A stretch of DNA of 64,000 nucleotides from Carpediemonas membranifera BICM (Eukaryota > Protista > Fornicata). Location of the stretch: the NCBI GenBank assembly GCA_019828565.1, contig JAHDYR010000008.1, forward strand, positions 62,001-126,000. The letters are read 5' to 3'. Below the pieces are notes generated by a model, which was not told the DNA's origin, did not search any database, and was given only the letters and a program-made list of their open reading frames with translations. The number at the start of each line of letters is the position of its first letter. Positions within the stretch are counted from its first letter, which is position 1. Below, piece by piece: positions 38,587 to 60,778 of the stretch. The position numbers were made by a program, and so were the translations under genes.

Positions 38587-38615
38587 CCCTTGCCACAGAT
38601 GTTCAGTTCCCGTCA

Positions 38616-40634: not shown

Positions 40635-41392
40635 CCGAGGGTACCACGTCGGGCCCACAGTCGATACACAGGAAAGGCTACTGGATTTGCGAGGCCGCCC
40701 CACTCGTGTCTGACTGGCGCCCCCCGATCGCTGCCAAGCAGATAATCGCCGCCGCCCGGAACGTCGCCTCTGTAGAAGGCCTGACCGGGGGTGCGAAGCC
40801 TGTCACGTCCGCGAGAGTCCGCAGGGTCATAGACAGACGTCGGAAGTCACCCCAAGCCTTCCAGGCCGCCCTCTTTTCTGCTCTCTGCTTTATCACCGTG
40901 AGTAGAGGCGCAGAGATCTTTGGGCTCAGACGAAGAGACGTCGAGTTCGACGCTGATGGCAATGCCCTCCTTCTGTTCGCGAGAACTAAGACTGCCACAG
41001 GCGTCCGCAAGCTGGTACCAAACCAATCGTGGGCCCGCTTTAACCCAGCAAGGGCCCTGAAGGCATGGGTCCCCACGGCAACGCGCCGCGACGACGACCT
41101 CATCTGGCGGGCGATCACCTCAACCGGTGGTATTTCACTATCGAAGCCGCTACCGGCGTCAACCCTCCGCCACTGGATCCACCAGGCGTACGGCACCGAC
41201 ATTTCGTGGCACTCATTCCGCAAGGGCGCCACCACGGAGTTGGCGGTAGCCCACACGAGTACCGAAGTCCTCCTGTCCATGGGGACGTGGGCCTCCACGA
41301 AAAGCATGCTGAGATATATGGGCAACGGGGTCCGCACACACCCGGGGGTCCAGGGACACCTGGCCTCCATCCTTCTCCAACCACCACTTTAA
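40500..41392 (+). CDS. YR1 tyrosine recombinase domain (end of the long frame overlapping RT; start approximate)
   Basis: Catalytic R (VSRGAE), K (RTKT), HxxR (HSFRKG), W (GTW), Y (MLRY). Confidence 0.9.
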
Positions 41393-41650
41393 ATCTCTGA
41401 CGGGAGCTAGTGGCTGGGAGAGCTAGGTAGGGTGGGGCTGACACGCGTTACAACGGCAGATGTAAGCCACAACAGACATTCTTTGACGCGGTCTCTCGAG
41501 GAGACGGTCGGTTTGGGCTCGCAAGCGTGCCTGCAAGCCATTCCACTATGCTCGTTGCCGGTGGGTGTGCCATTGTTGGCTTGCGCAGGTAGATCTGTTT
41601 ACATAAACTGCACTGGCTCTCACTTCCCTCCTCAAGGCGAAGCTAGCCAG

Positions 41651-44473
41651 CTAACGGCGGCCATTGCCCCGGAACTTCCGCTTGTAACGTGCGAAGAGGG
41701 GCGTGAGACCTGGGTTGAGGCGTAGGTAGTCATCCAGGGCGGCGAGGCGGTCGTAATATGCGTTATACGGAATGTACGAGTCCTCGGAGTCTTCTAGGCC
41801 TTCCCAGTGGACGAGGAGCTCGAGGCGTCGGTTGCGCTCGCGGTGGCCGACGATGGCGGAGACTTGTTGTTCGTCTTGTTCGTATGCGGCGATGCGCTCG
41901 AGTGTCTTGAGGTCTGCTGTGCCTGGGTCGAAGCGAATGAGGCGGTCCTGGTGGACGAGCAGCTCGGACTTGGTGACGAGGTCACGGAGGACGAATGTGT
42001 TGGGGCTCTTCCCTTCCCTGAGGAGTTGTAGCGGGCCGCGGACTGGAGGCAGAATCTTGGATGGGGCCTTGTGAGGATATCTCAGGAGCACTAGGCGTTC
42101 GAGTTTCCAGTCGAAGTTGTCCGCCGGTTGGGTTTGTGCGGCCTTGTGACGCTCGTATGCGGCGATCTTCGCGCGGGCTGCGTCGTGCATGGCCTGTATG
42201 TCGGTGTGGAATGCGTTAATGGCCTGGATGGTAGGTGTGTCTTGCGTCGCCTTGGCGGCGCTGATGATGCGTGACTCCGGGAGGGCCGTGAGCGCGGACG
42301 TGTGTCCGAAAAGCAGCTCGAACGGCGTGAAGCCGGTAGTCGAGTGTGTCGAAGTGTTGATAATGTGTTGCACGATTGGGATAAGTGCGGGCCAGTCGGT
42401 CGTTTCTGAGTCTAGTAGCAGGGCGCGCAGTCTGCGCATGATGGTCCCATTGACTCTCTCGACAACGCCGTTACTCTGTGGGTGGTACGCTGTGGAGAAC
42501 CTGTGGTTCAGGCTGATCTTCTTGTTGAGAGCGGCGATGGTTGAGTTCTTGAACTGACTTCCCTGGTCTGTCTGGATCAGGCTGGGTGCGCCGAAGAGCG
42601 ACCACAACTGGAGCATCGCGTCGGCGGCTTCTTCTGCCGAGGTTGACGCAACCGGCTTGAGCACAGTGAACTTGCTGAAGACGTCGGTGAACACGATCAC
42701 GTGAGCGAGGCCATTCGTCTTTGGAAGCGGGCCGAGCGTGTCTATCTGCACCGCCTCGAATGGGCGGGTCTTCTGGGTCGTATGCCACTGGGCCTTGGCG
42801 ATGGGGTGGGATTTGAGCTTCTGGCAGACTGGGCAAGTCGCGACGTGCTCCGCGACGTCTGAGTTCATGGAAGACCAGGTCTTGCCGGCTTCCTTGAGAT
42901 GGGCGATCGTTTGTTTGATCGAAGCATGGCCGTTGGCTCCAGCGTGGGCCTGCTGAATGTCGAAGCGGTGGGTGCTGCTGGCGATTTCGCTGATCGCCGC
43001 GCCGCTGGGGCGGGAGAGGGCGTCCGCGACGACGTTAGTTGTCCCTGCGATATGCATGATGTCGAAGGGGTACTCGGATAGGATGAGTCTCCATCGCGTG
43101 AGCTTGCGCGTCCCTTCCTCAGCCTTGCGAATCATCCACACGATGTTCTTGTGATCTGTGAGTACGGTGAATGGCTTCAGCTTGAGAATCTGGCTAAACT
43201 CTGGCCGGGTGATGCAGTATATGACTGCGTAGAGCTCTTGCTCGACCGTCGCCCAGCGGCGTTGGGTCTCTGTGAACGTCTTTGAGAAGTACGCGAGGGG
43301 TTTCTTCGTGTCGCCCTCGTGTTGCCACAGCACTCCGCCGGCTGCGATTGTGGACGCGTCTGTCTCAAGTGTCCACTTGCAGGTCAGGTTGGGTAGTGCC
43401 AATGCCTTGTTGTCGGTGCACAGCTCCTTCAGAGCCGCGAATGCCTTGTCGTGTTCCTCAGTCCAAGGGAGCTTGTCTAGCTTCTTGGGTGACCCCTTGA
43501 GGAGGGCGTTGAGGGGGGGCTGTGGCTGAGCTGAGTTGCGGGAGGTAGTTTGCGAGGTGGTTAAACTTGCCCATCGTGCGTCTGAGCTCTGTGACGGTGG
43601 TGGGGGCGGGCAGCTCCTTCAGCGCGGCGACGCGGCCTGGGCTCACCGAGCGGCCGGAGCTGTTGATGATGAATCCGCAGACCTCCACTTCGGCGGCGCC
43701 GATGGTACATTTGTCCGCGCGGAGGCGCAGGCGGTTGTCCTTGGCTCTCTGGAGGGTGAGTCTCAGGGTGTTGAGGAATCCTTCTTCGGTCCGTGCGTAG
43801 AGGAATATGTCATCCACGTAGACCCGGTGGCCGGGGATGCCATCTAGCACGGCCTCCATCGCTCGTTGAAACTTGGAGGGGCGTTCTTAAGTCCAAACGG
43901 GACCCTGAGGAACTCGAATTGGTGCCCGGGGACTACGAACGAGGTAAGGTGGATGCTGGCCGGCTCCATCAGCTGCTGCCAGTATCCGGACCGGAGATCG
44001 AGTGATGCAAAGTAAGAGCATCCGCCGGCTTCGTGGGGCAGGTCCCTCAGATCGGGGAGGGGAAAGGCGTCGTCCTTCGTGGCGTCGTTAAGATCGTTGA
44101 ATGCGACGCAGAAGCGGGGTTCGCCGTTCTTCTTGGTTGCCATCGTGTGGCGGCTGGCGTGCTCGGACTGGCTGTCTCGTATGATGCCGAGCTTCTTCAT
44201 CTTCTCGATCTCGGAGAGGGCGGCTGAGCCAGCCTCTCCGACAAGCTGTCGAGGACGGCACTTGAGGTGAAAATCGCGTGTGAGTTCGATCTTGTGAGGC
44301 TGTAGTTTGCTGCCTTCGGGCGGGAGAGCCGGGTCGAACACCTCATCGAACTCCTCGACGATGCTTCGGACCTTGTTGGCGAACTCGGTGCCGTGGTCGT
44401 CCGGGATCGCGACGGCGAGCGAATGCTTCGAGTCCGAGGTTGACGCCGCTTCGAAGACGTCGGCGTCGATCAT
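41651..44473 (-). CDS. G1 Pol (RT-RNase H-integrase-chromodomain), with frameshifts near 43870 and 43510
   Basis: LDLRSGYWQ, PFGLKNAP, VYVDD, ETDAS, GHAS..CPVCQ, IDTLGP, TDQGSQF, YHPQSNGVVER, VSAIVGHR..LVHWEG. Confidence 0.88.
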
Positions 44474-44498
44474 GTTGTGCTCTTCTAGATCGTCCTTA

Positions 44499-45536
44499 TC
44501 ATCCGGCTTCTCGGACGGGAGTATCAGTAGGGTCGAGGGTCGAGAGGGCGTCTATGCAGTCGCGGGCGGGACGCCAGTTGCCGTCCGAATCCCGCTCGAT
44601 CAGCGCCTCGTATAGCGGGATCGCGTCGTCGTCGTATCCCTTGAGGGCGACGGACCGGACCGCAGCGCGGAGGGCGCTGTCGGGGATCTTATGGTAGCCA
44701 TCGGCCTCGACGACGGGGTTGTACCCGTCGCACGCCTTCTGCAGGCGCAGAGTGTTAAGGCGGTGGGCCGCGTTCTGGCCGTACAGTTGGGTGCCCTTGC
44801 TCGTGATGGCCTTGAGGCGTGCACCGCGGTCGAGTGTTGGCATCAGGGTAAGGTACAGGTGAGGCAGGATGGTCCTGGCCTCGGCGCGAAGCTGGTCACG
44901 CACGGACACGGGGGCGGAGGGGGCGGCCGTTGCCGCTGACGGGAGAGAGTTGACGATTCTCGCGACATCCGCGGCCGATCGGGCCGGTTTGTCGTCCAGG
45001 GGGTTCGTTAGCGTCGCGAAGGTGAGGGTCGCATCCGGGTCCGCCTCGTGGCGGTCGTGGCTGGCCGTGCAGAGGCTGGCGAGCTTATCGTTCAGCTCGG
45101 CCTCGGCGCGGTCGTAAACAGCCTGCATCCGGCGCATCGCCGGGTCGAGAAGCGGGCTGTCCTTATAGGTGTTGGCGGCTGCAGCACAGAGCAAGAAGAG
45201 ATCGTCCTGCAGAGCGTCGATGATCGCGCGGTATCTTGCGCGGCACGACGTGGCGTGTCTGTCAGGTTCTTGCTTGGCGTGTTGTGCCTGCGAGACCACG
45301 TCAGGGATAAGGGAGTCCCAGAACGACTCGAAGGTCGGTAACGTGGAGGTGGGCCGCCATGTGGCTTGTAGAAGCTCGAGGGTCTTTGCCGTGAATGCGT
45401 GGGGGAAAGAACGGGGTCTTTTGACGTTACCGACTTCCCGTAACCAGATCTCGTACCCCGTTGTGAGGGAAGAGACGTCTATCACGGATAGACCACTGTG
45501 TGATTCTGTAGAAGCAGAATATCGATATTGTGCCAT
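44499..45536 (-). CDS. G1 Gag (start codon inside the 5' LTR)
   Basis: ATG at 45536 (MAQYRYS..); local similarity to G2 Gag (PTFESF/PTFEDF, GY..I/L, DSDG/NSDG). Confidence 0.7.
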   Translation of the reverse strand: MAQYRYSASTESHSGLSVIDVSSLTTGYEIWLREVGNVKRPRSFPHAFTAKTLELLQATWRPTSTLPTFESFWDSLIPDVVSQAQHAKQEPDRHATSCRARYRAIIDALQDDLFLLCAAAANTYKDSPLLDPAMRRMQAVYDRAEAELNDKLASLCTASHDRHEADPDATLTFATLTNPLDDKPARSAADVARIVNSLPSAATAAPSAPVSVRDQLRAEARTILPHLYLTLMPTLDRGARLKAITSKGTQLYGQNAAHRLNTLRLQKACDGYNPVVEADGYHKIPDSALRAAVRSVALKGYDDDAIPLYEALIERDSDGNWRPARDCIDALSTLDPTDTPVREAG

Positions 45537-46006
45537 TGTTGGCTTGCGCAGGTAGATCTGTTTACATAAACTGCACTGGCTCTCATGGGATATCCCCGTT
45601 GGGTAGAGCAAGTATGTCTAGAGGCTAGGACAGCTAGCTGGCGTTACATCGCGCTGACAGGTTACCTCGGGTAACGGGCCGTGAGCGGAGGGCAATGAGA
45701 TCGCCTCGCTCCGGCATGGTGATGCGCCGACCAGGCGAGCCGCGCAGTTTATGCGGGCAGAATGGTAGAAAATTCGGAACATCCAGATCCGACGGCACGA
45801 TACTGGTCAAGACCGGTATATCCGCCCAGTAGGTAAGCTGGCCGGAGTCCCCTGATCGTTTACACTAGCTCTCTTCTTTAATAAACGATCGCCCCCGTTG
45901 GGTAGAGCAAGTATGTCTAGAGGCTAGGACAGCTAGCAAATCCTTTACCCCCCTTTGGGAGTATGAGTTAGGTGGCTAGCCTAGTCTAGCCTCCAGCTAT
46001 AAAATT

Positions 46007-46078
46007 CGTCCACGCTGGGATTCGAACCCAGATCACTGGCTCCGGAAACCAGTACACTGTCCCTTATGCTACGCGGAC
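46007..46078 (-). tRNA. tRNA-Arg (anticodon CCG)
   Basis: GTCCGCG acceptor stem, anticodon arm CTGGT-TTCCGGA-GCCAG, T-arm CTGGG-TTCGAAT-CCCAG, CGTGGAC+G; TTTT Pol III terminator at 46001-46004. Confidence 0.92.
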
Positions 46079-46352
46079 ACGGCAACCCGGAGATCGTTCA
46101 GCAGAGAAGGATACGGTACCTGCTTGCTGCTTCAACACCAGACGCACTTCACAAGCCGATGGCTGCGTTTCTAGTCTGTAGACGCGCTATTGGTGAATTG
46201 TGCCTTAAAATGCGAATCTCAAAATGCCCTGAAACACCCCAACATAACCACTCCTGAGTTATAAACATCTGGCGCTACATCGTCAGTAAGGTTACCTCGG
46301 GTAACGGGCCCGGAGCGGAGGGCGATGCGATAGCCTCACTCCGGGCAAAAGG

Positions 46353-49300
46353 TGTGGTATGGATAGAACAGCTAGCGAAAGAGGTTTAATCAATTGATTG
46401 GGACACTACCCCTCTCCTCGAGGTGACGGCGCACGACGGACGTGCGGGCGGCGTCAGAGTTGGGACCCTCCCACGTGGCCTTAGCCTCAGGGAAGCCGAG
46501 CCACTTAATGAGGAGGTCGCCAGTCTCGTCGTCGACCTCTAGGACTTTCTCGACGTAATACTCCTCGTCGTCGGTAGCCGCGATGCGCAACAGTTCGGCG
46601 TCGCTGAGGGGGCCTTGGCAGATGCGGATTAACTGGCTCAGGTGGACCCGGCGGCTCTTGCCGCCAGTGAGCGGCGTGATCTCCGCTGCGTAACCGTCGG
46701 CGGCTGTGATGCGGAATGGGCCGCGGTGGCCGTGTAGCTTCGTGGGGCTCTCGTTCTTACGAAGGACCAGAGTGCCCGGCTCGATCGGGGGCGTCGGCTC
46801 TGCGGTCCTTGTCATTGCCTGCTGGCGGTTGAGGGCCTGGTCGGCGAGGATCTGGAGGTGCTCGGTGAGCGCGTCGATGTAGGAGGCTATGTCGTCCAGG
46901 GGAGTATGAACTCTACCCTCCTCCTTGGGTGCGATCGTGAAGTCGCGAGCGGAGGCATGCTTGCCCATCAAGAGAGCAATGGGTTCGACGCCGGTGACGG
47001 AGTGGACCGTAGTGTTCAGGATGTACTGGACGTATGGGACCACGGAGGCCCAGGCGTCGTAACGGTCAAACATCAGACAGAGCACACGTAAGTGTCGCTT
47101 GACTTCCTGGTTGCGTCTCTCGGCCAGGCCGTTTGACTGAGGGTGGAAAGGGATTGTCCGGTGGTACGTGACCTGCAAGCGATCAAGGAAAGCTTCTATC
47201 ATCCGATTGCGGTACTCGGGGCCGTTGTCCGAAAGGAACTCGCGAGGCACACCGTAGCGTCCGATGATGGACCAAAGTGCCAGCCCGACCGTCGTCGCGT
47301 TGTTGGAAGCTGTGGGGATGAGCTCCGTGAAGCGGGTAAACATGTCGGTTGCCACCACGATGTATCTGAAACCCTCGGAGTCGACAGGGAAAGGACCCAT
47401 GGTGTCTACAGCGATGGTCTGGAAGGGTCGGTCGCGCAGAGAAGACTGCGTTGTGGTCTTAATGAAAGCGGAGAGGCGTGCCTTAGCGCAGTACACGCAG
47501 GTTGACACGACTGCGTGCACGTCGGAGTGGAGGCCTGGCCAATCGTGCCCAAGCTGGCGGACGTTCCTGATGGTGGCCTGCTCGCCCTCGTGGTATCGGT
47601 GAGCTTCTTGCACGATCTTGCGCTTGGCGTCTTCGTCGAGCTCGGCCTCTGAGACGTTGTTGACCTGCGTGACTGTGGCCTGCGGGTTGTATCGACTGAG
47701 TGCGTCGGCCAGTGTGTTCTGCGCGCCTGCGATGTGTCTGATGACGAACTCGAACTCTTGGATCATAAGCAGCCAGCGGAGGTGCTTACGGTTTTCCTGG
47801 CCAGCCTTGGAGTGCAGGTAGACCAAGTTGCGGTGGTCCGTCCAGATCGTCAGGTCCTGGTGGACTCTAAAGATGGGCGAGAGGTCAGGCCGAGTGAGGC
47901 AGTAGATGATCGCGAACAGCTCCTGGTCGTACGTGCACCAACGCGACTGTGTGTCGTTGAAGACCTTTGAGAAGAATGACACGACGCGCCATGTGTTGTC
48001 CGAGTCAAGCTGCAGTAAGACACCGCCGATGCCTTCGAGAGAGGCGTCGGTCTCGAGGCGCCAGGGCCTGCTCTGGTCCGGATGGGCGAGGACCTCTTCG
48101 TCTGTCACGGCCTGCTTGAGCTGATCAAACAGAGCCTGAAGCGTGTCGTCCCAGTCGTTGAAGGTGTAGGGTGGGACCTTGCTGACCAAGGCCTGGAGCG
48201 GCTTGAGGCGTGTCTGGCAGTCGGGGATATAGTCACTGAGGTATGTGAACATACCGATGATCATGCGTAGGTCCTTGACCGAGTGAGGTGCGGCGAGGTC
48301 CTGCATGGATCTGACACGAGTAGGGCTCATGCGGCGGCCCTTGCCATCGACGATATCGCCGAGGATCTCGATAGACGTCGCCCCGAAGACACACTTGTCG
48401 CCGCGGAGGCGGACGTTGCGTTCCTCTGCGATACAGAGTAGGCGGTCGACGTGGTCTAGAAGCTCCTGAGGTGTCTTGGCTCGACCAAAGATGTCATCGA
48501 TGTAGTTCTTCGTACCGTCGGCGCGCACAGGGGCAAGGATTGCCTGGATGGCCCGCTGGAACTGTGACGGTAGGTTACGAAGACCAAAGGGTGCAAAGTT
48601 GTACTCTTTGAACCGGCCTGGCAGCGTTATAGCGGTGAGGTACTTGTGGTCTTCGCGTACTGGCATTTGATGAAAACCTGACCGGAGGTCACAAGCGAAG
48701 AAGTACTTGGCACCGATGAAGTCGTTGGTGAAGGTGCGGATATCTGCGAGGGGGAACCTGTCTGGTGTAGTTACCGAGTTAAGCTCGCGGTAGTCGGCGC
48801 AAAGTCGTAACTCGCTTGACTTCTTCACTACGATGACGGCTGCGGATGCCACGTGGCTGTAGGAATCGCGTACGATGCCCTGTCTGTCCATGTCGTCGAT
48901 AATCTCGTGCACTCTTTCGGCGGTGGATGCCGTGAGCGGTCGAGGGGCATGGTTGGGTAGGGGTGCGCCTGGCACGATGTCAATCGTTGCGGCGGCGATC
49001 TGGGCGCCGTCAGGGTGCAGCTCGCCGAATACCGGTGCGTGCCGGCGGATGACATCAGCCATCTCGGCTTTGAGCGGGAAGTCGCTTGCGATGCGTGTGC
49101 CAAGTGGGCCCGCGTCGTCGCTGACGATGTTGTTGACTGCGTGGAAGTCATCGGTCTGGTCGTCGGGGAGGCCTTCGTCCTCGCCGTCGTGAACTTGCGG
49201 GCGGAGGCGAAGCATGATGCCCTCGTCGGACATGAGGCCTAAGAACCACAATATATCCGAGCCGATGAGGACCTTATCGGCCCTGCCGCTGATGACGTGC

Positions 49301-50876
49301 AGGGGCCAATCGATGATCGTTCGGCGGTCGCCCAAGCGGTCCGCGACCAGCGTTGTCTCGAAGGTGCCGTGTTGCTGGAGACCTTGGTCGTCAGGGCCCG
49401 TCAGCTGGACCATGTCGGGGCCCCTCCTGCCAAACTGGGCGAGTGCGTTGGCGAGGTCCAGCGAGATGGTGGACACTACGGAGCCAGGGTCGACCGTCGC
49501 TGAGATAAGCGTGTCACCTATCGTCACTGGAATCCGGAGAAGCCGGCCCGGCGAGTAAGCGTGCTCGGCATGCTCTACGTTCTGAACGCTGCCTTGTTGG
49601 GGCTTGTTGGGGGGTGTCGGTGTGAATGGTGTGGCCTGCTTGGGGTTCTGCCTGAACTGCCAAGGACCCTTCGACGTCGATGGTTGCTGGGGCTGCTGTG
49701 GTTGTCCAGCGGCCTGTCGTTGGGGACCAACTGCCTGCGGCTGGCGTGACTGGTTCTGCTGGGCGGCTGAGGCTTGGTGTGGTGTGCGTTGAGAGGCCTG
49801 GCCCTGGCGGGGATCTTGAGGTTGGCGGCCCGCCGGTGTGGCTCTGTTAGCCTGACTCTGGCGCTTCAGCAGCCGGCACTCTTCAGTAGAGTGGCCGCCG
49901 GGACCGTGGACGCGGCAGGTCTTGCGGCCGTTGCCCGGTGTAGCGGGGACCTTGGCGCCTGCCATGGGACCGGAGGTCCTCTGGCAGAAGGACCAAGGCG
50001 TGACGATCGTCCCATCGGAGTTAGTTGGCAAAGCCAGGATGCGGTGCTGGACGTCATCGATGGTGGTGGCGCCGTCGGCGAAATCCTCGAAGGCGAGGGC
50101 GGCTTCGGTGACGTCAAAACCGCGGGTCAGCACGCGGAAAAGCGTGGATATCAGCCTCTTCTCGGTGAGGGGCGTGTAACCGTTTTCTTCTGTCGGGAAC
50201 TTGGGGTTCAGCTGGCGACAGTGCTTGCCGAAAGCTAGGAACATCTTCTGCATAGAGGTGATGTCTCCACCTGTGAGCGTGGTCCTTTCCAGGATCGCCG
50301 CCGCGCGAGCGGCTGGGTTGGCCCGCTGGGCGGGTGTCAGCTCGAAGTACGCGGTGTAGGTGAGCAAGAGGTCCGCCCGCTCGCGGAGCTCCTCCCTCGA
50401 GAGGCGCTCTGAGGCGTTGGTCGAGGTGTCTGGGGCCGTCGGTGGCGGACTGACCGCCTTGAGGGCTGCGGTGATGAAGGCCTGCTTCAGCTCGTCTGAA
50501 GCGATCGAGGCCGCTTGGGTGTCTATATCCTTGAGCTTGGCCAGGAGAGCGCTGAGCTCCTCGGCCGATTTGTCGTCGTCGTTCTTCTCGGGTTCATTCT
50601 GCTCGGAAGGCTTATGAATGGGAGGACGGATCTCTGTCTCAAAGAAGCATTGGAAATCCTCGAATGTTGGGAATCTCGTTGTCGGGATGAACGCCGCGCG
50701 GATTTCGGCTAGTTTCTCGCTCCCGAGGAAAAAGAGGATGCTAGACGGCTGCTTTTTGCTTGCAACATGAAGACGATACTCGTCTAAACGGCTGTTGCTG
50801 ACTAAAACCATGACAGTGATCACTGTGGTATGGATAGAACAGCTAGCGAAAGAGGTTTAATCAATTGATTGGGACA
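46353..50876 (-). mobile_element. G2: intact chromodomain Ty3/Gypsy element with 53-bp LTRs and 5-bp TSD (AAAGG)
   Basis: Identical LTRs at 46353-46405 and 50824-50876; AAAGG at 46348-46352 and 50877-50881; the empty site ccgggcaaaaggtgtttcg is in the second A copy (about 51186-51204); PPT at 46406-46419. Confidence 0.96.
46390..50811 (-). CDS. G2 single Gag-Pol polyprotein (Gag, Zn knuckle, protease, RT, RNase H, integrase, chromodomain)
   Basis: CRVHGPGGHSTEEC, VDPGS, DYRELN, DLRSGFHQ, YIDD, ETDAS, TDHRNL, HRYH..CVYC, SDNGPEY, HPQSNGLAER, YYVEKVL..LIKWLGF. Stop codon lies inside the 3' LTR. Confidence 0.95.
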   Translation of the reverse strand: MVLVSNSRLDEYRLHVASKKQPSSILFFLGSEKLAEIRAAFIPTTRFPTFEDFQCFFETEIRPPIHKPSEQNEPEKNDDDKSAEELSALLAKLKDIDTQAASIASDELKQAFITAALKAVSPPPTAPDTSTNASERLSREELRERADLLLTYTAYFELTPAQRANPAARAAAILERTTLTGGDITSMQKMFLAFGKHCRQLNPKFPTEENGYTPLTEKRLISTLFRVLTRGFDVTEAALAFEDFADGATTIDDVQHRILALPTNSDGTIVTPWSFCQRTSGPMAGAKVPATPGNGRKTCRVHGPGGHSTEECRLLKRQSQANRATPAGRQPQDPRQGQASQRTPHQASAAQQNQSRQPQAVGPQRQAAGQPQQPQQPSTSKGPWQFRQNPKQATPFTPTPPNKPQQGSVQNVEHAEHAYSPGRLLRIPVTIGDTLISATVDPGSVVSTISLDLANALAQFGRRGPDMVQLTGPDDQGLQQHGTFETTLVADRLGDRRTIIDWPLHVISGRADKVLIGSDILWFLGLMSDEGIMLRLRPQVHDGEDEGLPDDQTDDFHAVNNIVSDDAGPLGTRIASDFPLKAEMADVIRRHAPVFGELHPDGAQIAAATIDIVPGAPLPNHAPRPLTASTAERVHEIIDDMDRQGIVRDSYSHVASAAVIVVKKSSELRLCADYRELNSVTTPDRFPLADIRTFTNDFIGAKYFFACDLRSGFHQMPVREDHKYLTAITLPGRFKEYNFAPFGLRNLPSQFQRAIQAILAPVRADGTKNYIDDIFGRAKTPQELLDHVDRLLCIAEERNVRLRGDKCVFGATSIEILGDIVDGKGRRMSPTRVRSMQDLAAPHSVKDLRMIIGMFTYLSDYIPDCQTRLKPLQALVSKVPPYTFNDWDDTLQALFDQLKQAVTDEEVLAHPDQSRPWRLETDASLEGIGGVLLQLDSDNTWRVVSFFSKVFNDTQSRWCTYDQELFAIIYCLTRPDLSPIFRVHQDLTIWTDHRNLVYLHSKAGQENRKHLRWLLMIQEFEFVIRHIAGAQNTLADALSRYNPQATVTQVNNVSEAELDEDAKRKIVQEAHRYHEGEQATIRNVRQLGHDWPGLHSDVHAVVSTCVYCAKARLSAFIKTTTQSSLRDRPFQTIAVDTMGPFPVDSEGFRYIVVATDMFTRFTELIPTASNNATTVGLALWSIIGRYGVPREFLSDNGPEYRNRMIEAFLDRLQVTYHRTIPFHPQSNGLAERRNQEVKRHLRVLCLMFDRYDAWASVVPYVQYILNTTVHSVTGVEPIALLMGKHASARDFTIAPKEEGRVHTPLDDIASYIDALTEHLQILADQALNRQQAMTRTAEPTPPIEPGTLVLRKNESPTKLHGHRGPFRITAADGYAAEITPLTGGKSRRVHLSQLIRICQGPLSDAELLRIAATDDEEYYVEKVLEVDDETGDLLIKWLGFPEAKATWEGPNSDAARTSVVRRHLEERGSVPIN

Positions 50877-51239
50877 AAAGGTGTTTCGCCGGTCAGGCGA
50901 GTCACGCAGTTTATGCGGACAGAATGGCGCAAGGTTCGGATCCGCCGGATCCGACGGCACGGTACCAGTTACGACTGGTATACTCCTTCTCCCTCGGTAA
51001 GCGGAGAGGACTTCACGTTTAACTTACACTAGCTTCCTCGTTAACATTGTGTAAATTAAGCGCCCCCCCCCCGTTGGTTAATGAAAAGAATGTCATGAGG
51101 CTAGGATAGCTAGCTGGCGCTACATCGTCAGTAAGGTTACCTCGGGTAACGGGCCCGGAGCGGAGGGCGATGCGATAGCCTCACTCCGGGCAAAAGGTGT
51201 TTCGCCGGTCAGGCGAGTCACGCAGTTTATGCGGACAGA

Positions 51240-51794
51240 ATGGCGCAAGGTTCGGATCCGCCGGATCCGACGGCAACACGCTTAGATAAGCTAGAAGCTT
51301 CAATCAATTCCATGTCCGAAGCCCTAAACAGGCTTGCTCCTCCGCCTCCGCCAGAGAAAGAACCTGACGACGAAATGCTCGAAAGTTCCACCGTTGCTAG
51401 GTTCAATACCTCCGAATCGTTGGAGGAGGACACGATGGAGGACATAGATGCAACTCTGGCAGAGATGGACACCTTCTCGGAGTTACCAAGCAAGAGACCT
51501 CTCAAGGCAGAAGCGAAGTGGCTTCAACGCGTTGTCGTGATCACTAGTGCTCTCCCAGATTCCGCGACGAAACAACGTCTTCTTCTCGAACTACAGGCTC
51601 GTAGAATGGTCCTAGACCTCAAAGATGATAACTGGTCCGATGCCACGACCGAGCTGTTTCAGGACCTCTTCAACAGCACAGAAAGCAAGAGCAGCCGCAC
51701 CATCGCTTACTGCGCAGCGAAGGCCCGCTCTAAGGGCAGGCGTAAGGACACCAACGGTAACATGGGGGGGTTTCACAAGAAGAAGAGAACATAA
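51240..51794 (+). CDS. YR2 ORF1 (Gag-like)
   Basis: 184 aa; homologous to YR1 ORF1. Confidence 0.85.
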   Translation: MAQGSDPPDPTATRLDKLEASINSMSEALNRLAPPPPPEKEPDDEMLESSTVARFNTSESLEEDTMEDIDATLAEMDTFSELPSKRPLKAEAKWLQRVVVITSALPDSATKQRLLLELQARRMVLDLKDDNWSDATTELFQDLFNSTESKSSRTIAYCAAKARSKGRRKDTNGNMGGFHKKKRT

Positions 51795-51820
51795 CAACCT
51801 CTGTTCATCAATTCCCGTCG

Positions 51821-52763
51821 ATGAACGCGAGGTGGTGGTTATGGGAAAGGCTCGGCGCCTCGGACGAGGTGGTCGGCTGGCTCCGTCACGGCGTACCTAT
51901 CAAGCTAACAGGCACTCCCCCGCCACCCACGCCACAACGGCGCCTGGACCCACGGCTCACCCCAAAGCTCGACGAGATGGTCCGACTCGGCGTGATCTCA
52001 CCCTGTACCAGCGGGCAACTCCGGCACAGTGCCCCGCTCTTCGCGGTTGCAAAGGGCGAGCACGATGTCCGCCCGGTACACGACCTACGCGACCTCAACG
52101 CAATCACTGCGGAGACGCGGGTCTTCCGGCTCTTCGGCCTAAAACGAGCAGTGCGCAACCTCAAGCGCAACGACTTCATGCTCAAGATCGACTTAGCCTC
52201 CGGCTACCACCAGATGGGTGTGGCTCCGACCGACTCCACGCTACTGGGGATCGTCCTCCCCGAACGGGCAGGCGTACAGATACAACACACTAGGGTTCGG
52301 CTGGACCGCTGCCCCGTTCGTGTTCCAGTCTACGTCCATCCAGCTAGCAAAGATACTCGCGAACCGCTTCAACGTGACAATAGCGGTGTACCTCGACGAC
52401 TTTCTCATCTCACATCGGTCACGTCGCCACCTAGCAGACGCCGCTCCCCAAATAGTCGCGCTCATGAGGTCGCTGGGAGCTATCCCAGGGCTCAACAAGT
52501 GCATCCTAACTCCCACACAACGCCTGGAGTACCTAGGAGTCACCATCAACACAGCCGCCGAGACACTGCAGATTTCCAAGGACAGAGCCGATCGCTATGC
52601 AACATCAATCGAGCAGGCCCTCAGGGCCGGCAGGATCGATGCAACCGAGTGGCAACGCCTACTAGGCCGCCTCTCGTTCTTCGCAAGTACGACACAGTTC
52701 GCCAGGCTCCAGCTCAGATCACTCCAGGCCCTACATCCCGCCCCGACGCTTCACATCTCGCAG
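51821..52763 (+). CDS. YR2 RT, 5' part (frameshift near 52260; interrupted by insertion)
   Basis: RPVHDLRDLN, KIDLASGYHQ, LGFGWTAAP, VYLDDFL. Confidence 0.88.
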
Positions 52764-53234
52764 TTCACCAATGATTTCAGCAAAGTGGAAACACTTCGAT
52801 CATGGATGGACAAGGACCAACAGGCCTGGCCTATATGGATAGGGCAGTGCCCCATGGAGCTCAGAAGGAGCGGCCTTGGCCTCCTGTCTGAACATTCAAG
52901 GGTTGCTATCAGGGCATACCGCTGGGCGCGAGTGGGAGCTCCACGCCCATACCAAGGAATCAAAGTGTCTTCATGGAACGTATGTTTACAAGGAAAAGGA
53001 AAACAACCGTCGAGGGCCAGTGCTAGCACCGGCGGCTACATGGTTTTGTCAAGACCACAAGGAAGGAAGGGCAGCACAAAAGGGAAACAGGGGCCGTCGA
53101 TAGAGGCTAAAAAGGAGACTACGAACAAAGCAACAACAACTACACAGAAAGGCCCCGCTACTCAGAAAAGGGCGACGCATTTTTAGGACCGCGCCTTTTT
53201 GAAAGAATGGCCTATATAGTACGGAGCATGGACA

Positions 53235-56200
53235 ATGGGAGAAACTGGAAGGCCTGGACGGAGACCTCACCCGGATATGTACATGTGGCCCGACTTTCGG
53301 ACCCAAAAATTCCGACCCAGTTTATGGACTAGGAAAAGGGGAGAAATTTTGCACTCAACAATGCAGGTAGAAATACCGACAAGGATCAGGGATTCCACGC
53401 AGAAGCAGTGGGAGGACATCAGGGAACTACTGGACAGCTTCCTCGCTGAAAGGAACGATTCAAGGACTCTACTTCTTCGTAGAACAGGCAAGTTTACAGG
53501 AAAGTCGCTCAATGCGAACTCCAAAGGACGCAAGGAAGTAATCATGAACGCCAGACGCATCCTCTTCGCAACCGGCGTCACTGACAACAAGGACATCATC
53601 CTCAGGAACCCATGCGGCATCCACGGCCTCCGCGACCTTTTCTACATGCTCACAGAGGCGCTCAACCCCAGAGACGAGGAAGCAAAGGACATGGCACAGG
53701 CACTGGAGCCCAAGACGCTGAAAGCGGGCTTCACTGGCATGGCAAGATGGCCATCTGAGAAGGACATCGAGACGGCGATCCTCAAGCCGAAGGAAGATGG
53801 GCCCATCGAATGGGATGTAGACAGGGACAGCGTCAAGAAGGCCGAAGGGTCGTTCATACTGGTATCAGGGGCTCATGGAGACGAGGCCGTAGAAGGCGTG
53901 CCTTACGACAAGGTATGGGATCCGGCAAACCAAGGCCCGGTCACCAGAGTGGCCTACGAGCAAGAGGACGGCAAGTACACGGTCATCCTAGAGCTAAGCG
54001 ACACGTCAGCATGGTCCATCAGCCGCTTCATGGAGGAGGCTAGGGACATCCTCAGGCTTCAGGCACCGGAGGCCCCGGCCATATGGCAGGCAGCATGGAA
54101 CAAGTCAGGGATCTACCTGAAGGGCAGAACCAATATCCTGGGCGAAGGGGAGGAGACCCCCCTTAGCAACGAGCCGCCGTTCCGGAAGGTGAGGCTGGAA
54201 GTGCTCAAGGCCACCTCGGTCCGCAGCAATAGGGACGAACATGCCGATCTGGACAGGTCGTCCGCTAGCACGGTCATCGACGGAGACGAGGAGCAACATG
54301 TCAAGGACAAGGAGGAACGACGCCAGCAGGCCACCATGCCCGGCAGAAGAAGCCTCGACGACAGCCTCCTGGAAGTGAACAAGGACATGGTCGGGGCCAA
54401 CCAAGGCAAGATCGACCAGGACGAGGAGGTCGACTCAAACAAGGTCAGCAGCCAGCCGCCGAGGATGCCTAGAAAGGACAAGGAGAAACGGCTGGTGATC
54501 GGAGCCATCGACTTCGAGTGCGCAGACCCTGGCGTCAAGAAGGCAGGGATCCCTGCCATCCCGGTTGAGGGCGGGATCGTACTCTTTGACCTCAGCACTG
54601 GGGACATTCTTGGACACGGGCATGGCCTGTATTACCAGGACATACCGGCAGCAAGCATGGACCAAGCGAGGTACACGGCATGGGCAGTGACGGGGCTGCC
54701 GCCGGCCACCTTCGTGGAGGTCGGGACGGGGCGGCCGCCGATCGAGTATGAGAAGCACATACATACTTTCAGGGACTGGGCCAACCGCCTGGCGGCTCAG
54801 CTGGCAAGGATCGAAAGGTCGGAGGGCTGGAAGATAATCATGTATGCAAAGGGGGTGGAGATGGAAAGCTTCCTCCTCACGAACCCCACAAATGGACTGG
54901 AGCAAGGAACCAGGGAATTCTTCCAAGCTAGGCTGGTGGACGAGAAGAAGCTACCAGAGATCCTGGAGAACAACGGCAAGGGAGGAGGCTGGCCAAAACC
55001 TCAGGGACAACCTCGACAAGGCCAACTACCTGGAAGCAGTAACAACATGGTCAAATGGATGGCAGAACAGGAGCGAGCCCAAGGGAGTCTGTCCGTACCA
55101 CAGACACACCGCGGGTTGCTACCACTGTGGGTTGGCGGATACAGTAGTCTTCACAGCCAGGATCAGGGCCCTATGCAAGGAGAGGATGAGCACCCCAGAC
55201 GTCTACCACTACATGGGTAAGGCACTCGACAAGACCATGGAAGCAGTCGGGAAGGCGGAGCCGGGCATGGATATCATGGGAGGCCCGGAATTCGCGACAA
55301 GGAGGGACACCTTTGAGATCTTCGGCACGTACCCGATCGGGGACGCAAGGGACGTCAGCAGGGAAGTCGGCGACAGGATCCTCGTAGTCCCGGACAACGG
55401 ACACCGCTTCGGCATCGGCTTCGGGTTCGGGGAGGTTCTGTTGGGCATGAAGGGCATCTTACTGGCCCCCCTCACAATCATGGACAACGAAGGAGTGCTG
55501 GAGAGAAGCCCACTATGGACCATCATGGAAAGAGCCACGGCTAACCAGCTCCGCATGGTACGCGTCAGGAAGGGCCTAGGGGCAGCAAGGGAGGAGGACA
55601 TCATAACCATGGCCATGCTATACGAGTGGTGGCCCTCGAAGGAGGCTACGGCTCATCAAGGAGTCTGGGGCTGCGACGACCTAGCAGAGAGCCTCAGGGA
55701 CTATGAGAAGGTCATAGTCAACGTCAAGGCCCCCAGGAACAGGGGTAGGATCACCCTAGGGGCGAGCTTCATCCCGAGAGACTGGGGCATGGTCAGGGTC
55801 AGCGAGGCTGGGACCATCCTAAGCCGCATGCGCAAGGAAGGGGCCAGACTAGTCTCGGCAGCTATCCCGGACGAGCCCAGAGCCAACACAGTCAATGTCC
55901 CAGGCATCACGTATGTCCCCACCATCGACGGAAAGTCCGAACAGCCATACCAAAGTAGGTTCTTCGACAACGGCCTGGAGGAAAAGGCGAGGCGGATTAG
56001 CACCAGGATGGTGGGCAGGCACTTCTGTGATCTTGTCGAGGTTAAAGGTTTCAAAACAAACTGTTTATAGGGTTCGCACGTGTAGTTGGTACCCTAAACT
56101 GCTCACACTTCCCCTCTAAAGGTGCAGCTCCGGGTGAGCCTCGGCATAAATGTCGAGGGCTTCGAGGTCGCGGACCTCGTGGTACGGGAGCCACTCATCG

Positions 56201-59200
56201 GCGCCTGGGTAGCCATCCCAGGCGACGAGGAATTCGAGGGTAGACTTCGTGGGGCCACCACGGTGGCGGGTGATGGCCTCGACTTCGTAGGTGTCGTCGT
56301 CAAGGGAGGCGACGGTGATGTCATCGAAGGCCAGGGAGTCGTCGTACTCCACGAGCCGGGAACCGTGATACTGGAAGGTGGCGCCGGCAGTGGGGTTGTG
56401 TACGGTGTAGATGTCGTGCTCGCGGTCAGTGATCGTGTATGGGCCAACGAGCTTAGTAGACAGCTTGGTGGGGCGCTTCGAAGGGCGCGTGACAAGCACC
56501 TTCGAGCCAATAGGAAGGGGCTCGTCGCCGAAAGCCGGACGTTTCGAGAGGACGTTCTCTTGGTGCTGGCGTGCTGTCTCAATGAGCTTGGGCTGGGCCT
56601 GGAGAACACGGCTAAAGAAGCGGCCGTATTCACTCTTCTCCTCCTCAACGTGGGCGTCGGACGACAGGAAGGGGGTGACGTTCTGTGAAGCGAACATGAG
56701 CTGTGCGGGGGCAATGCCCGTGGTGGCACATATCGTGGTGTTCATGATCCGCTGGACGACTGGGAGGTAAAGGGACCAGTTGTTAACGTCGCGCAGCTCC
56801 TGAGTGATGGTACGTAGGTGTCGTGAGAGCTCGGCGTTAGCTCTTTCGACGAGCCCGTTGGCTCTGGGGTGGTATGGAAGCGAGACAACGTGTTGGGCGC
56901 CGAAGAGCTTAATGAGCTGTTGGAAAGCGGTGGCAAGGTACTGAGAACCGCGATCACTTCGGAAAGAAGACGGAGTACCGTAGCGTCCCGTGACGGAGAT
57001 AAGAGCGCGAAGGGCCTCTGCAGAAGAAGCATCCTTGCATGGGACCAGCTCTACGAAGCGTGTGAAGGTGTCAATGAAGGTGATAACGTAGCGGCATCCG
57101 TTGGAGTCTGCAGGATAAGGCCCGACCGTATCAAACGCCCAGCAGGAGCGTGGGGTGACGCCCATGGTAGGGCGGAGGCCTGTCTGAAGGCGCTTGGGAA
57201 GTCTGGCGTTCTTCTGACATATCGGGCAAGCCTTGATATACTCGGCGACAGCGTTGCTCATTCCACGGAAGTCAAGGTTTCGTTCCTTAAGGAGGCGGAG
57301 TGTAGCCTCTCGGCCGAGGTGTCCCTCGACGGCATTGTGGACAGAGGCTATGATAAGTCGCTGGAGTGTAGGGGCATTCTCGGGGGGTTGGACGATGAAG
57401 CACCTGGATATGCCATCAGTGAGGGTGTTGGAGACGCCAGAGATGTGTTCAACGACAAAGTCGAACTCTTGGAGTCTGAGGTTCCAGCGGACGACCTTGG
57501 GTGTGGTAGAACGGCGCATATAAACTAGGTTACGGTGGTCTGTCTGTATAGCGAACGAGTGGCCGAGGAGATAGGGGAGTACTTCTCGACAACCGCGAAG
57601 AAGATGCCGAAGGCTTCCTTTTCGATGACAGCCCAGTTGCGCTCTGCGGTGGTGAATGCGTGGCTACAGTAGGAGACTACGTGTTCAACGCCATCCTTGA
57701 CGTTGAGGAGCACGCCTCCACAGCCAATGTCGCTAGCATCGGTGCGAACGATAATTGGGGCAGAGTAGTCCAGGAAGGCTAAACACGGCGTGTGGGCGGC
57801 GAGGTTCTTGCTCTCTTCGAAAGCAGTCTGGGCCTCCTTTGTCCATTTCCACCGGACCTTCCCAGAGGTGAGGGCGTATAGTGGCTGTAGGATCGAGCTG
57901 AGGTTGGGGATGAACCTACGGAAATAATTCATCGCTCCACAGAAGGCCCGCGTGGTCTTGATGTCCTTAGGAGGAGCCATGGCCTGAACGGCCTTGACCC
58001 GGGCGGGGGACATGCGGATTCCCTCGGGGGAGATGATATGGCCGAGGTATTCCACCTGCTCAGCGTACAGACAGCACTTGCTGGGATGAAGGACGAAGCG
58101 ATGTTCCTTGAGAACGGCAAGGATCTCAGCTAGGCGTGTAGCTAGTTCGTCCGTGGTTGATGCGTGAATGATGATGTCGTCTATGAAGACCTCGCACGTA
58201 GTTCCGACAAACTTGGAGAGCAATTGGGTCATGATGGCCTGGAAGGTAGCAGGAGCCGTTTTGACGCCAAATGGAACGCGCGTATACTCATAAAGGCCGG
58301 TTGGAGTTGAAAACGCGGTTATCGGAATGGAACTTTCGGACAGTGGGATCTGGTGGTATCCACTAACGAGATCTAACGTCGCAAAGCAACGTTGGCCTGC
58401 GAGATGCGACATCAGCTCTTCTTGGTGTGCAAGTGGGAAACTGACTTGCTTGATGCGATCATTCGCCTGACGGTAGTCCACGACGAGGCGGCGGGCACCG
58501 CCCTTTTTGGGGACAGTAAAGACGGGTGCAGCCCAGGGAGAGCGTGAGGGGCGGACGATTCCTTGAGCAAGGAGCTCGTTCACCTGGTCATCAACCTCCT
58601 GCTGGATTGCAGGGGATAGACGACGCGGCGGTTGAGCAGCCGGTGTGGCGCCCTCAAGCAGCTCTATCTCCATAGGGGGAACGTCTGCTCCGTCTGGGTG
58701 GGGACGGCTGGTGAAGACTTCGGCATACTCATCATAGACGGCTCTGATGGCTGGCGGGAGGGCAGACGCGGTTGAACCTACGTCAGGGAGCTGCTCTCCT
58801 TCATCTAGGCGAGTGACGGGTGCGTGATCCTCATCGATCGTCTCCTCATCGGCCGTTGGGGGCCAAGGAGAGGGAGAGATCTTGGATAGTGGAGTTTGAG
58901 AGGATCAGATCCTCCGACATAGAGGGGAGGATGTAGAATGGCCGAATGGAGCGAACGCCATCAATGAGCATGGCAAGGAACACAGCTCTCTTGATGAAAA
59001 CTGGACCGTTCGCGGTATCCAAACGAACGTTAGCGACGGCTGGAAGAGCGCCACGTTGGATAAATGATTCGGCTATCGTGGGGGAGATGAGGTCAATAGT
59101 TGCACCAGTATCAAGTACTGCACAGACCTCTGTGGCAGTACTCTCGTTGATGGGAACATAGAGAGTGGCTTGGCGACAGATGAGGCCGTCGTGATCAGTG

Positions 59201-60778
59201 GCGGCCAGATTCGCCTTTTCGCGCTTGACTGGCGGACCCTGGATGGGAGTCTTGCGCACGCCAGAGCGGAAGAAATCTCTGTGTCCTTGATAGGGACAGT
59301 TGGGGCGGATGTGGCCCGTATGGCCACAGCCGTGGCAGGGGCAGACGATCGTTGGGGTAGTCTAGCCCCAGCGGCGGCGCCGGGAGTCGGGCGCTTACCA
59401 GCTGGCTGGGCCGGTTCCGGCTGCAGGAGCGACTGGAGGTTAAGGAGTTCCTCCAGTTCATCAATGGCGTGGTCCTGCGCCTCTGCGACGTCATCTGGCT
59501 GCTCCATGCGGATACGCTCCGCAAGAGGATCTGGAAGTGCCTGCAGGTATGCCTTCACCATTAGCTTCTCTGGTGGTGTGACGTCGGCTGTGAACGAGCT
59601 CCGGATAGTTTCGAAGCGTTCGATATGGTTGAGAAGCTGTGCAGGCGTTGATAAGGGGCCCGTTCGGGCGCACCGCAGCGACTTCAGCTTGGCTAGTGCT
59701 TGAACGTTACTGCGGGGGCTATAGAATGTTTGGTAGACTGTGTCCAAGACAGTATCCGCCGGAAGATCGGCCGGATTGTCGTTGAGACGGCGTGTGATGA
59801 GAAGAAGAGGCGTAGGATCCATCAGGGCAGTCGGATGGAGAAGAGGATCGTCAAGGCGTTGAGCTCGGTACGCACGGTAGGACGATCGGAACTTGGTGAA
59901 CGCCTGTTCTTCTAGTGTTAGTAAGAAAGGTCTTGGTATGTAGTCGGACATTAGATGAGTGTACACTGTGATCTTGTCGAGGTTAAAGGTTTCAAAACAA
60001 ACTGTTTATAGGGTTCGCACGTGTAGTTGGTACCCTAAACTGCTCACACTTCGGCCAGGACGCGGATCAAGGACATCACGACCAGCATGGAGACAGGGAA
60101 GAGGACAGAAGGGTAGGACACGGAGCCGGCGGTAGAGCTGGTGTCAGAGCTGACGACAGAACCGGCGACAGAGCTGGTAACATGAACAAGACCTCGGATC
60201 GTAACCACGGAGGAGACGACAGGGAGAGACAGGACAACACGGGAACGCAGATGAGAGGCTCGTTCAGCGGGAACACCTGGGCCGGTAGAGGCTCAGAGGG
60301 AGGCATGGACAACAGCAAGGATCACTCTTCCTCCACGACGCTCAAGCGCAAGGAGGGCAGCACGAGTAGGATCATGGACTCGGACAGCGGAAAGAGAAGC
60401 AGGCACGAAGAGGACATGGACTGGGAGTCTGGAAGCAGACAGGCAACCGGCATGGACTCGGAGAAGCTGCGGCTCCGAAAGCAGTTGGCAGAGGCGCAAC
60501 AAGAGATCTCAGCGCTCAAGGCTGCCCGACTCATGCAAGAGCAAGGCCACGGAAGGTTGGTGCTCTCCGGCGTCGCGACTAAGCCCAGCAAGGAGAAGCC
60601 CACGATCCCCCGGCACAAGCACAAGAAGGCTAAGAAGGCCAAGCAGATCTCACCCATGGACCTGATGACCCAGTTCATCACGGTAATGCAGAGTCTACAA
60701 GGACAGCAAGTGAGTCAGGCCGAGGACAGCTGCAGCGGCAGTGGGGGAGTCCACGGAGGAGGAGTAAGGACATGGTAA
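53235..60778 (+). CDS. Non-LTR element ORF1 (53235-56025 + 60053-60778 after removing G3; frameshift near 54980) containing a Maelstrom-like domain
   Basis: Removing G3 and one TSD copy restores the frame MVGRHF|GQDADQG...MNKTSD. MAEL-like motifs at 54490-55170. Confidence 0.75.
56026..60048 (-). mobile_element. G3: chromodomain Ty3/Gypsy element with 82-bp LTRs and 4-bp TSD (CTTC)
   Basis: Identical TGTGA..TCACA LTRs at 56026-56107 and 59967-60048; CTTC at 56022-56025 and 60049-60052; PPT AGAGGGGAAG at 56108-56117. Confidence 0.95.
56116..59951 (-). CDS. G3 Gag-Pol (at least 3 frameshifts, near 59350, 58850 and 57560)
   Basis: CHGCGHTGHIRPNC knuckle, VLDTGA protease, LDLVSGYHQ, FIDD, TDAS, GHLG..CPICQ, SDRGSQY, HPRANGLVER, YEVEAITRHR..LVAWDGY chromodomain. 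Confidence 0.88.

Follow-up and report, generated by a model that had tools for sequence, protein, structure and literature searches.

A palindrome at the primer-binding position of Ty3/gypsy retrotransposons in Carpediemonas membranifera and environmental assemblies

In a stretch of 64,000 nucleotides from Carpediemonas membranifera BICM (GCA_019828565.1, contig JAHDYR010000008.1, positions 62,001 to 126,000; the whole of this stretch is called the window below), three Ty3/gypsy long terminal repeat (LTR) retrotransposons, G1, G2 and G3, each carry a perfect palindrome at the position of the primer-binding site, immediately where the 5' LTR ends. The priming of reverse transcription is a defining step of every retroelement. 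To our knowledge, only two modes of priming are established for LTR elements, namely by a host tRNA or, as in Tf1, by fold-back of the 5' end of the element's own transcript. Fungal Copia elements have provided the one earlier report of a palindrome at this position, for which no explanation was given. Here we show that this geometry defines a large and diverse Gypsy lineage, that its symmetry is maintained by compensatory changes, and that neither of the known alternative partners is present. The observation is thus confirmed and generalized, and the mechanism is open to sharp tests. We give a probability of roughly 0.4 to the reading that the palindrome is the primer-binding site, that it replaced the tRNA-binding sequence and that it pairs with a second copy of itself.

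Three Gypsy elements and the ends of their 5' LTRs

The ends of the LTRs were set independently of the palindromes, by comparison of the two LTR copies (self-comparison of the window) and by the target-site duplications. The resulting features, all on the minus strand, are as follows.

41566-45585, minus strand: G1, Ty3/gypsy element of 4020 bp with an LTR pair and target-site duplication CCCA; open reading frame (ORF) in at least three pieces
45529-45585, minus strand: 5' LTR of G1, 57 bp, TG..CA; identical 3' copy at 41566-41622; boundaries set by the target-site duplication
45518-45529, minus strand: palindrome of G1, AATATCGATATT, 12 bp; its first A is the last LTR base
46353-50876, minus strand: G2, intact Ty3/gypsy element of 4524 bp; single gag-pol ORF at 46390-50823
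50824-50876, minus strand: 5' LTR of G2, 53 bp; 3' copy at 46353-46405; target-site duplication CCTTT
50813-50826, minus strand: palindrome of G2, ACAGTGATCACTGT, 14 bp; its first ACA is the LTR end
56026-60048, minus strand: G3, Ty3/gypsy element of 4023 bp; ORF in pieces; target-site duplication GAAG
59967-60048, minus strand: 5' LTR of G3, 82 bp; 3' copy at 56026-56107; lies within an 87-bp repeat that also holds the target-site duplication GAAG
59958-59967, minus strand: palindrome of G3, AGTGTACACT, 10 bp; its first A is the last LTR base

The two LTRs of each element were 100% identical, ran from TG to CA and were directly preceded, at the 3' copy, by a purine tract. The elements possessed the direct TG..CA repeats, target-site duplications of 4-5 bp and polypurine tract of Ty3/gypsy elements, with unusually short LTRs (53-82 bp), and the Pol domains matched with Pfam followed the Ty3/gypsy order protease-reverse transcriptase (RT)-RNase H-integrase in G2 and lay in pieces in G1 and G3. 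The ORF of G2 (1477 aa) matched RVT_1, RT_RNaseH, Integrase_H2C2 and rve in this order; the same Pol domains were found in pieces in the other two elements, together with a chromodomain in G1. The broken ORFs of G1 and G3 were kept as found, and neither a consensus nor a mended copy was made. A CCHC zinc knuckle was looked for in gag and was absent. The named database matches were plant and animal Gypsy elements at 25-32% identity. G1-G3 are real LTR elements and apparently young.

Read on the element strand, the last bases of the 5' LTR (up to the slash) and the bases that follow it were CACA/ATATCGATATT in G1, CACA/GTGATCACTGT in G2 and CACA/GTGTACACT in G3, and in each element the left edge of the palindrome fell within the last 1-3 bases of the LTR. 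No TGG was detected within 12 nt of the LTR end in G1-G3; the nearest TGG in G2 lay at +14, inside CATGG, the likely start codon. The first ATG of G2 was 12 nt past the LTR, and the likely start codons of G2 and G3 were 12-20 nt past it. A TGG-type tRNA site at 0-12 nt was likewise absent from about 30 relatives of these elements. Over its 64 kb, the window contained 63 perfect palindromes with a length of 10 bp or more, a density of 9.8e-4 per base. At this background, the chance that three of three elements have a palindrome starting in the last three LTR bases is ~2.6e-8, and the same chance for the eight elements whose LTR end was set by comparison of two copies is ~6e-21. A first-pass annotation, made from the sequence alone, had placed palindromes at these coordinates and at the primer-binding position, had reported no TGG-initiated site after the 5' LTRs and had regarded the shared geometry as unlikely by chance; all three claims were borne out by the independently set boundaries and the background count. 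It had also called the three LTRs unrelated in sequence, which needs a correction: they are not wholly so, as all three terminate in CACA and have a TATA-like box 31-55 nt before the end.

Palindromes and their symmetry in related families

With the G2 polyprotein as query, relatives of 40-59% identity turned up in one NCBI assembly, GCA_002919055.1; the matches in environmental assemblies were weaker. Our sample of relatives consisted of the contigs of these matches and 80 further loci from metagenome contigs (loci are numbered with the prefix L). Wherever the LTR end was fixed by two copies or by contig structure, a perfect palindrome started on the LTR-terminal A. Examples are listed below.

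L001 and L013: palindrome AGTATTAATACT
L006: palindrome AGTGAATTCACT
L007 and L012: palindrome ACAGTTATAACTGT
L014: palindrome AGTATCGATACT
L015 and L042: palindrome AGTGTACACT, as in G3
L027: palindrome ACAGATATATCTGT
L030: palindrome AGTGTTAACACT

The general form was CA/GT-centre-AC-T, and every close relative with an available 5' junction possessed the palindrome, as the first-pass annotation had proposed to check in other family members. We counted about 30 palindrome families (a figure biased upward) in one other assembly and in environmental contigs. To those listed above, some 15 families from unrelated samples were added by scanning for the motif and by scanning the sequence ahead of the gag start codon; as these scans looked for palindromes, they are the source of the bias. 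More distant relatives (L041, L051 and L076-L086) had ordinary TGG-type sites. On a tree of the RT-RNase H-integrase region (FastTree, 81 rows of pseudo-proteins, with X at stops and gaps at breaks), palindrome-type and TGG-type elements were separated by a single change. In the clade of G1 and G2, the palindrome was present in all 16 rows with the 5' junction on the contig; the other five rows lacked the 5' end. At least 10 different centres occurred among families of one assembly.

The LTRs of L001, L006, L007, L012 and L027 were also short, and the range among relatives was 53-113 bp. Because a TATA-like box lies 31-55 nt upstream of the LTR end in these LTRs, the leader upstream of the palindrome is predicted to be about 45 nt at most, with a very short R and with U3, R and U5 all tiny. 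Two other motifs were observed in the LTRs: that of G2 has a 12-bp perfect palindrome of its own, AATCAATTGATT, at 46388-46399 and 50859-50870, and AGATCT is common to the LTRs of G1, L001 and L012, where it follows the TATA-like box at a comparable position. Logan contig L008 spans nearly one LTR-to-LTR unit, with 3 nt of the cycle missing; its ends resemble an assembly break and were not used as transcript ends.

We examined the palindrome pair by pair from its axis. All 31 elements had Watson-Crick bases at pairs 1-5, each of which occurred as three or four pair types, and 25 of the 31 had them at pair 6; pairs 7-9 were at chance level. In most elements the edge of the palindrome was the LTR-terminal A, and just outside it pairing was at chance. 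In an ungapped alignment of 15 twelve-mers, the six inner pairs were paired in 90 of 90 cells, with two-sided changes at four of the six. The covariation score was reached by none of 500 shuffles, the signal was lost when the partner was slid by 1-3 columns, and three pairs tested outside the palindrome were paired in only 2-3 of the 15. Four palindromes with other outer bases, which were misplaced by MAFFT, were excluded from this formal pair count. The sister families L001 (GTATTAATAC) and L006 (GTGAATTCAC) differed by compensatory double changes at two mirrored pairs. Symmetry was kept across about 30 families despite sequence change, which argues for a sequence that pairs with itself.

The conserved position bears on the alternative that the palindrome acts in DNA, as a site for a dimeric host or element protein, for methylation, or as a promoter-proximal element downstream of the short LTR. 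Sites of methylation or protein binding are typically palindromic, there is little space for regulation in such short LTRs, and the LTRs hold further palindromes, such as AATCAATTGATT in G2. However, families of one assembly differ freely in the centre, and yet in about 30 families the position does not shift by a single nucleotide from the LTR end. Further, a complementary stem that flanks the palindrome, described below, would be meaningless for a site in duplex DNA. We consider a DNA-level role decidedly unlikely.

Pairing partners and the start of minus-strand synthesis

We searched each element for a sequence with which the palindrome could pair. Against the 96 nt upstream it paired no better than against shuffles (duplex energies, mean z +0.09; one of 31 below -2), which rules out pairing of the site with the LTR as in Tf1 and upholds the first-pass annotation on this point. 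Against positions +15..+114 there was no excess (mean z +0.13; only L037 and G1 near z -2), and a second arm downstream, of the kind described for GalEa elements, was ruled out for all but L037. The palindrome might also have had a further copy in the element, such as one close to the polypurine tract, but this was ruled out as well: even with one mismatch allowed, it occurred exactly once per element. The palindromes of G2 and L012 continue into 4-5 nt of their own LTR start, which prompted the idea of a remnant of a 2-LTR circle junction (CA GT .. AC TG followed by the LTR start). This idea was rejected; the others match by T only, and the 3' LTR is preceded by AG or GA where AC would be required.

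The self-duplex of the palindromes (10-16 bp) was computed at -8 to -22 kcal/mol, and in most elements RNAfold gave the palindrome as a hairpin of 3-5 bp with a 4-nt loop. The 18 nt before the palindrome (the LTR end) were complementary to the 22 nt after it (the start-codon region) above expectation (mean z -1.10; 11 of 31 below -1.64; Fisher p 5e-7; Wilcoxon p 0.0007-0.008 against positional controls), with a clear stem in only about a third of the elements. Judged from this complementarity, the palindrome tends to sit atop a stem, in a layout like a retroviral dimerization hairpin. The distance from palindrome to ATG was only 2-20 nt, and apart from the palindrome nothing is conserved from the LTR to the start codon.

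[quoted passage not shown] Dimerization of Ty1 RNA is driven by palindromes in the 5' untranslated region (PMC6844567), and retroviral primer sites may themselves contain palindromes, as in mouse mammary tumor virus (MMTV), although in that virus the palindromes in the primer site are not needed for dimerization (PMC8096270). Against a role in dimerization alone, the palindrome begins on the last base of the LTR, so that any primer must pair with it; no other conserved motif lies between LTR and ATG; and the centre varies among families of one assembly, which would not suit a single host primer. We regard this explanation as doubtful, though deserving of weight.

The right edge of an LTR is set by the start of minus-strand DNA synthesis, that is, by the first nucleotide copied from the primer. 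Therefore, the 3' end of the primer should pair on the palindrome or directly beside it, and the 2-20 nt that remain before the ATG leave no room for a separate primer site. Since families of one assembly do not share the sequence, one would expect the element itself to encode the primer; the palindrome being the only complementary sequence in the element, self-priming through the palindrome would follow. The GT that comes after CA resembles the two bases trimmed by retroviral integrase.

The self-annealing would probably take place between two genomic RNAs rather than within one, and antiparallel priming between two RNAs, as put forward in the first-pass annotation, would fit the anatomy of these elements. 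Two co-packaged genomic RNAs would anneal antiparallel through the palindrome (10-16 bp, -8 to -22 kcal/mol), which would often be displayed on the stem between the end of the LTR and the region of the start codon. One of the two RNAs would then be cut by an RNase H-type activity close to the duplex's 3' border, in a cut likened to that of Tf1, where it is made within one RNA. This would leave a 3'-OH opposite the LTR end of the partner, and its extension would copy the short U5-R leader. Because the site is its own complement, the plus-strand copy of the primer would match the minus-strand copy of the site, and no host RNA would be needed for the second strand transfer. Dimer linkage would be a further role of this duplex. 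Minus-strand synthesis would then have a third mode of starting, in which two genomic RNAs prime each other through a palindrome that also links them; we propose this mode only tentatively, and the tentative reading extends, as one joint claim, to its use by a large protist Ty3/gypsy lineage and, convergently, by the fungal GalEa Copia elements.

Priming might instead occur by fold-back within one RNA, which would be cut just 3' of the palindrome, the 3' end of the resulting mini-hairpin being extended over U5-R. The geometry would be the same as with two RNAs, the hairpin predicted by RNAfold in most elements (3-5 bp, 4-nt loop) would serve, and the authors who described GalEa suggested a hairpin (PMC5445492). 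However, a palindrome without a spacer allows stems of only 3-5 bp, and the duplex of two RNAs is far more stable. There is no downstream second arm like GalEa CHSeq2 (mean z +0.13), and the cut RNA would lose its leader and site, so that a second, intact RNA would be required in any case. Fold-back is thus unlikely.

Several points weigh against priming by self-annealing. An asymmetry is required, because a cut after the palindrome in each of the two RNAs would leave both bodies without the site for the second transfer, and there is no obvious stop to plus-strand synthesis as it enters the leader of the primer, unless this leader is very short. Many centres consist of A/T only, for example ATTAAT, and the duplexes that they form would be weak. 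Because AGT/ACT hardly varies at the outer positions, and because lineages far apart have centres in common (ATTAAT in five cases, AAATTT in three), selection acts on sequence as well as symmetry. Finally, the count of about 30 families is biased upward, most of the metagenome examples having been found by the palindrome search itself.

The ATTAAT centre was found in L001, L013, L020, L024 and L068, and the AAATTT centre in L056, L070 and L081. These recurrences, in families down to 25% pol identity, exceed free variation among 64 options and may reflect a preference for weak A/T duplexes or some other partner.

A complementary host tRNA was named in the first-pass annotation as an observation that would speak against self-priming. 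In the window, Rfam detected only the U2 small nuclear RNA (snRNA) and one tRNA gene.

46007-46078, minus strand: tRNA-Arg(CCG) gene, between G1 and G2; the sole tRNA of the window

This check was weakly positive: tRNA-Arg(CCG) is complementary to G2 over 8 nt (+3..+10) and to G3 over 7 nt (+3..+9), and to G1 over only 4 nt. With random 20-mers, such matches had p of about 0.01 for G2 and 0.05 for G3. An internal fragment of a host tRNA might act as the primer, as in copia or Ty5; for G2 and G3 it would come from tRNA-Arg(CCG) cut after position 48/49 or position 27. Both pairings leave the GT dinucleotide after CA, and the tRNA also matches the relatives with the same cores (L015, L042 and L017). 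Nevertheless, the tRNA contains CAGTG twice and CACAGTG is common to G2 and G3; a match of at least 7 nt to tRNA-Arg occurs in two of the 16 possible GT-NNNN-AC palindromes, which gives a chance of ~1.6% that both window elements with an 8-nt core (G2 and G3) match it; three of about 22 distinct cores matched, compared with about one expected; and U2 snRNA gives comparable 7-nt chance matches. Further, tRNA priming would leave the perfect palindromy unexplained and would require two odd cleavage sites in one tRNA, A/T-only cores such as GTATTAATAC or GTAAATTTAC are improbable in tRNAs, and G1 has only its 4 nt. The matches to G2 and G3 were judged to be chance, and we consider a tRNA fragment very improbable as the primer. 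A tRNA scan of 68 loci found only tRNA-Glu (L027) and tRNA-Pro (L044), and the tRNA-Glu had no primer-site match of at least 6 nt.

The tRNA-Arg(CCG) gene lies 274 bp from the 3' LTR of G2 and 421 bp from the 5' LTR of G1, and the tRNA-Glu(CTC) gene of L027 (5808-5881) about 750 bp beyond the 3' LTR; the elements may integrate near tRNA genes. L009 and L013 have a tRNA-like T-arm, GGTTCGAATCC, in a stretch at about 4340-4420 that follows the stop of the polyprotein and precedes the 3' LTR; ARAGORN did not call it as a tRNA.

Known priming systems and neighboring features

The closest precedent for the palindrome itself is the Conserved Hairpin Site of the fungal GalEa Copia elements, which measures 9 bp, follows the 5' LTR and forms a palindrome together with the LTR's final A (Donnart et al. 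2017, BMC Genomics 18:410, PMC5445492). It was suggested as a primer site, without a mechanism; its motif is CTGATCAGT or CTAATTAGT, two variants that cover 85% of families, and a complementary second copy, CHSeq2, lies 12-41 nt downstream and forms a hairpin with it (PMC5445492). The term 'new priming system', used in the first-pass annotation, was therefore overstated, and the interpretation given there is supported in part. GalEa and the present elements share the lack of a tRNA-type site and the palindrome that includes the final LTR A. However, GalEa elements are Copia, with integrase before RT, whereas the domain order of G1-G3 is that of Gypsy. GalEa has an almost fixed motif of the form ACT-centre-AGT, in contrast to AGT-centre-ACT with many centres and 10-16 bp here; the downstream second arm is absent here except in L037; and GalEa LTRs average 235 bp (PMC5445492), compared with 53-113 bp here. 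The sole GalEa-type hairpin in our sample was that of L037 (1-5984), which came from a freshwater metagenome and has the Gypsy domain order: its 156-bp LTR is followed by the exact GalEa motif ACTGATCAGT, as ACA/CTGATCAGT, and a complementary stretch, TGATCA, lies some 45 nt downstream (z -2.05). L037 links GalEa and the present Gypsy groups.

Self-priming of Tf1 was reportedly described by Levin in 1995 and by Lin and Levin in 1997. In Tf1, the first 11 nt of the transcript pair with the site after the LTR (as cited in PMC6317226 and PMC5006619). Like the present elements, the Tf1/sushi group belongs to Ty3/gypsy, in part with chromodomains, and has no tRNA primer; its own RNA serves as primer on about 11 nt directly after the LTR, and an RNase H cut of an RNA:RNA duplex has been proposed. 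The Tf1 site is non-palindromic and pairs with the 5' end of the same transcript, whereas here the only partner is the site itself. Tf1/sushi is the closest system in its working, yet its defining pairing is absent here.

The DIS hairpins and PAL1/PAL2 of Ty1 (PMC6844567) are likewise self-complementary sequences of the 5' leader, and the palindrome here, which would pair two genomic RNAs, tends to sit atop a stem; they differ in having a separate tRNA site, whereas here the palindrome occupies the primer position with no other candidate. Priming by internal tRNA segments or half-tRNAs, known from copia, Ty5 and the plant Osser and Bianca lineages (PMC6317226), also goes without a TGG-initiated site, and two of the three window elements are briefly complementary to an internal tRNA segment. 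In those systems, however, one conserved tRNA pairs over 10-15 nt with a non-palindromic site, compared with 7-8 nt here and none in G1, and tRNA matches would not be expected for the A/T-only cores. In Skipper of Dictyostelia, a polypyrimidine tract replaces the primer site (PMC5006619). Skipper is also a chromovirus-type Gypsy element of a protist that has lost the TGG site and presumably starts by self-priming, but its pyrimidine run is degenerate and is not a palindrome. In a non-exhaustive literature search, which left most subscription journals outside, we found no published description of a palindromic primer site in Gypsy elements beyond the GalEa paper and a paper on terminal-repeat retrotransposons in miniature (TRIM) of bivalves that cites it.

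The elements are compact objects for tests, being 4-4.7 kb long with identical LTRs and, in G2, one intact ORF. They would escape annotation by tools that depend on a tRNA-type site or set a minimum LTR length of 100 bp.

In the window, the Gypsy elements alternate with Crypton-like elements on the plus strand, which possess the C-terminus of a tyrosine recombinase (Phage_integrase) and in which RT was not detected; of the two copies, the second is broken into fragments and shares about 70% identity with the first over 1.1 kb. A module of ~165 bp occurs four times, at 37937-38099, 45639-45800, 51114-51275 and, split by the insertion of G2 within it, at 46269-46355 and 50871-50959. In two of the four cases the module makes up the 5' end of a recombinase element, and in the other two it runs into another shared sequence. 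The module had no Rfam match and a fold z-score of -1.2 to -1.9, and could be a terminal repeat or a preferred target. The Cdc20 encoded in the window was 61% identical to that of Carpediemonas membranifera, and the matches ranked after it reached at most 47%; the G+C content of 58% and the long dynein ORFs, nearly free of introns, also suit a metamonad of the Carpediemonas kind. The other features of the window are listed with these elements below.

38060-41392, plus strand: Crypton-like element
51240-56070, plus strand: Crypton-like element, second copy
35754-35937, minus strand: U2 snRNA gene (Rfam, 66.8 bits)
10577-22461, plus strand: dynein heavy chain, over three long ORFs (10577-14560, 14977-20781 and 20815-22461)
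4480-4985: tandem array with a period of 27 bp, about 18 units 90-98% alike, within a 702-aa calponin-homology ORF

Because a U2 snRNA gene is present, the host has a spliceosome, though the genes of the window look nearly intron-free. The split of the dynein heavy chain over three ORFs implies short introns or frameshifts between them.

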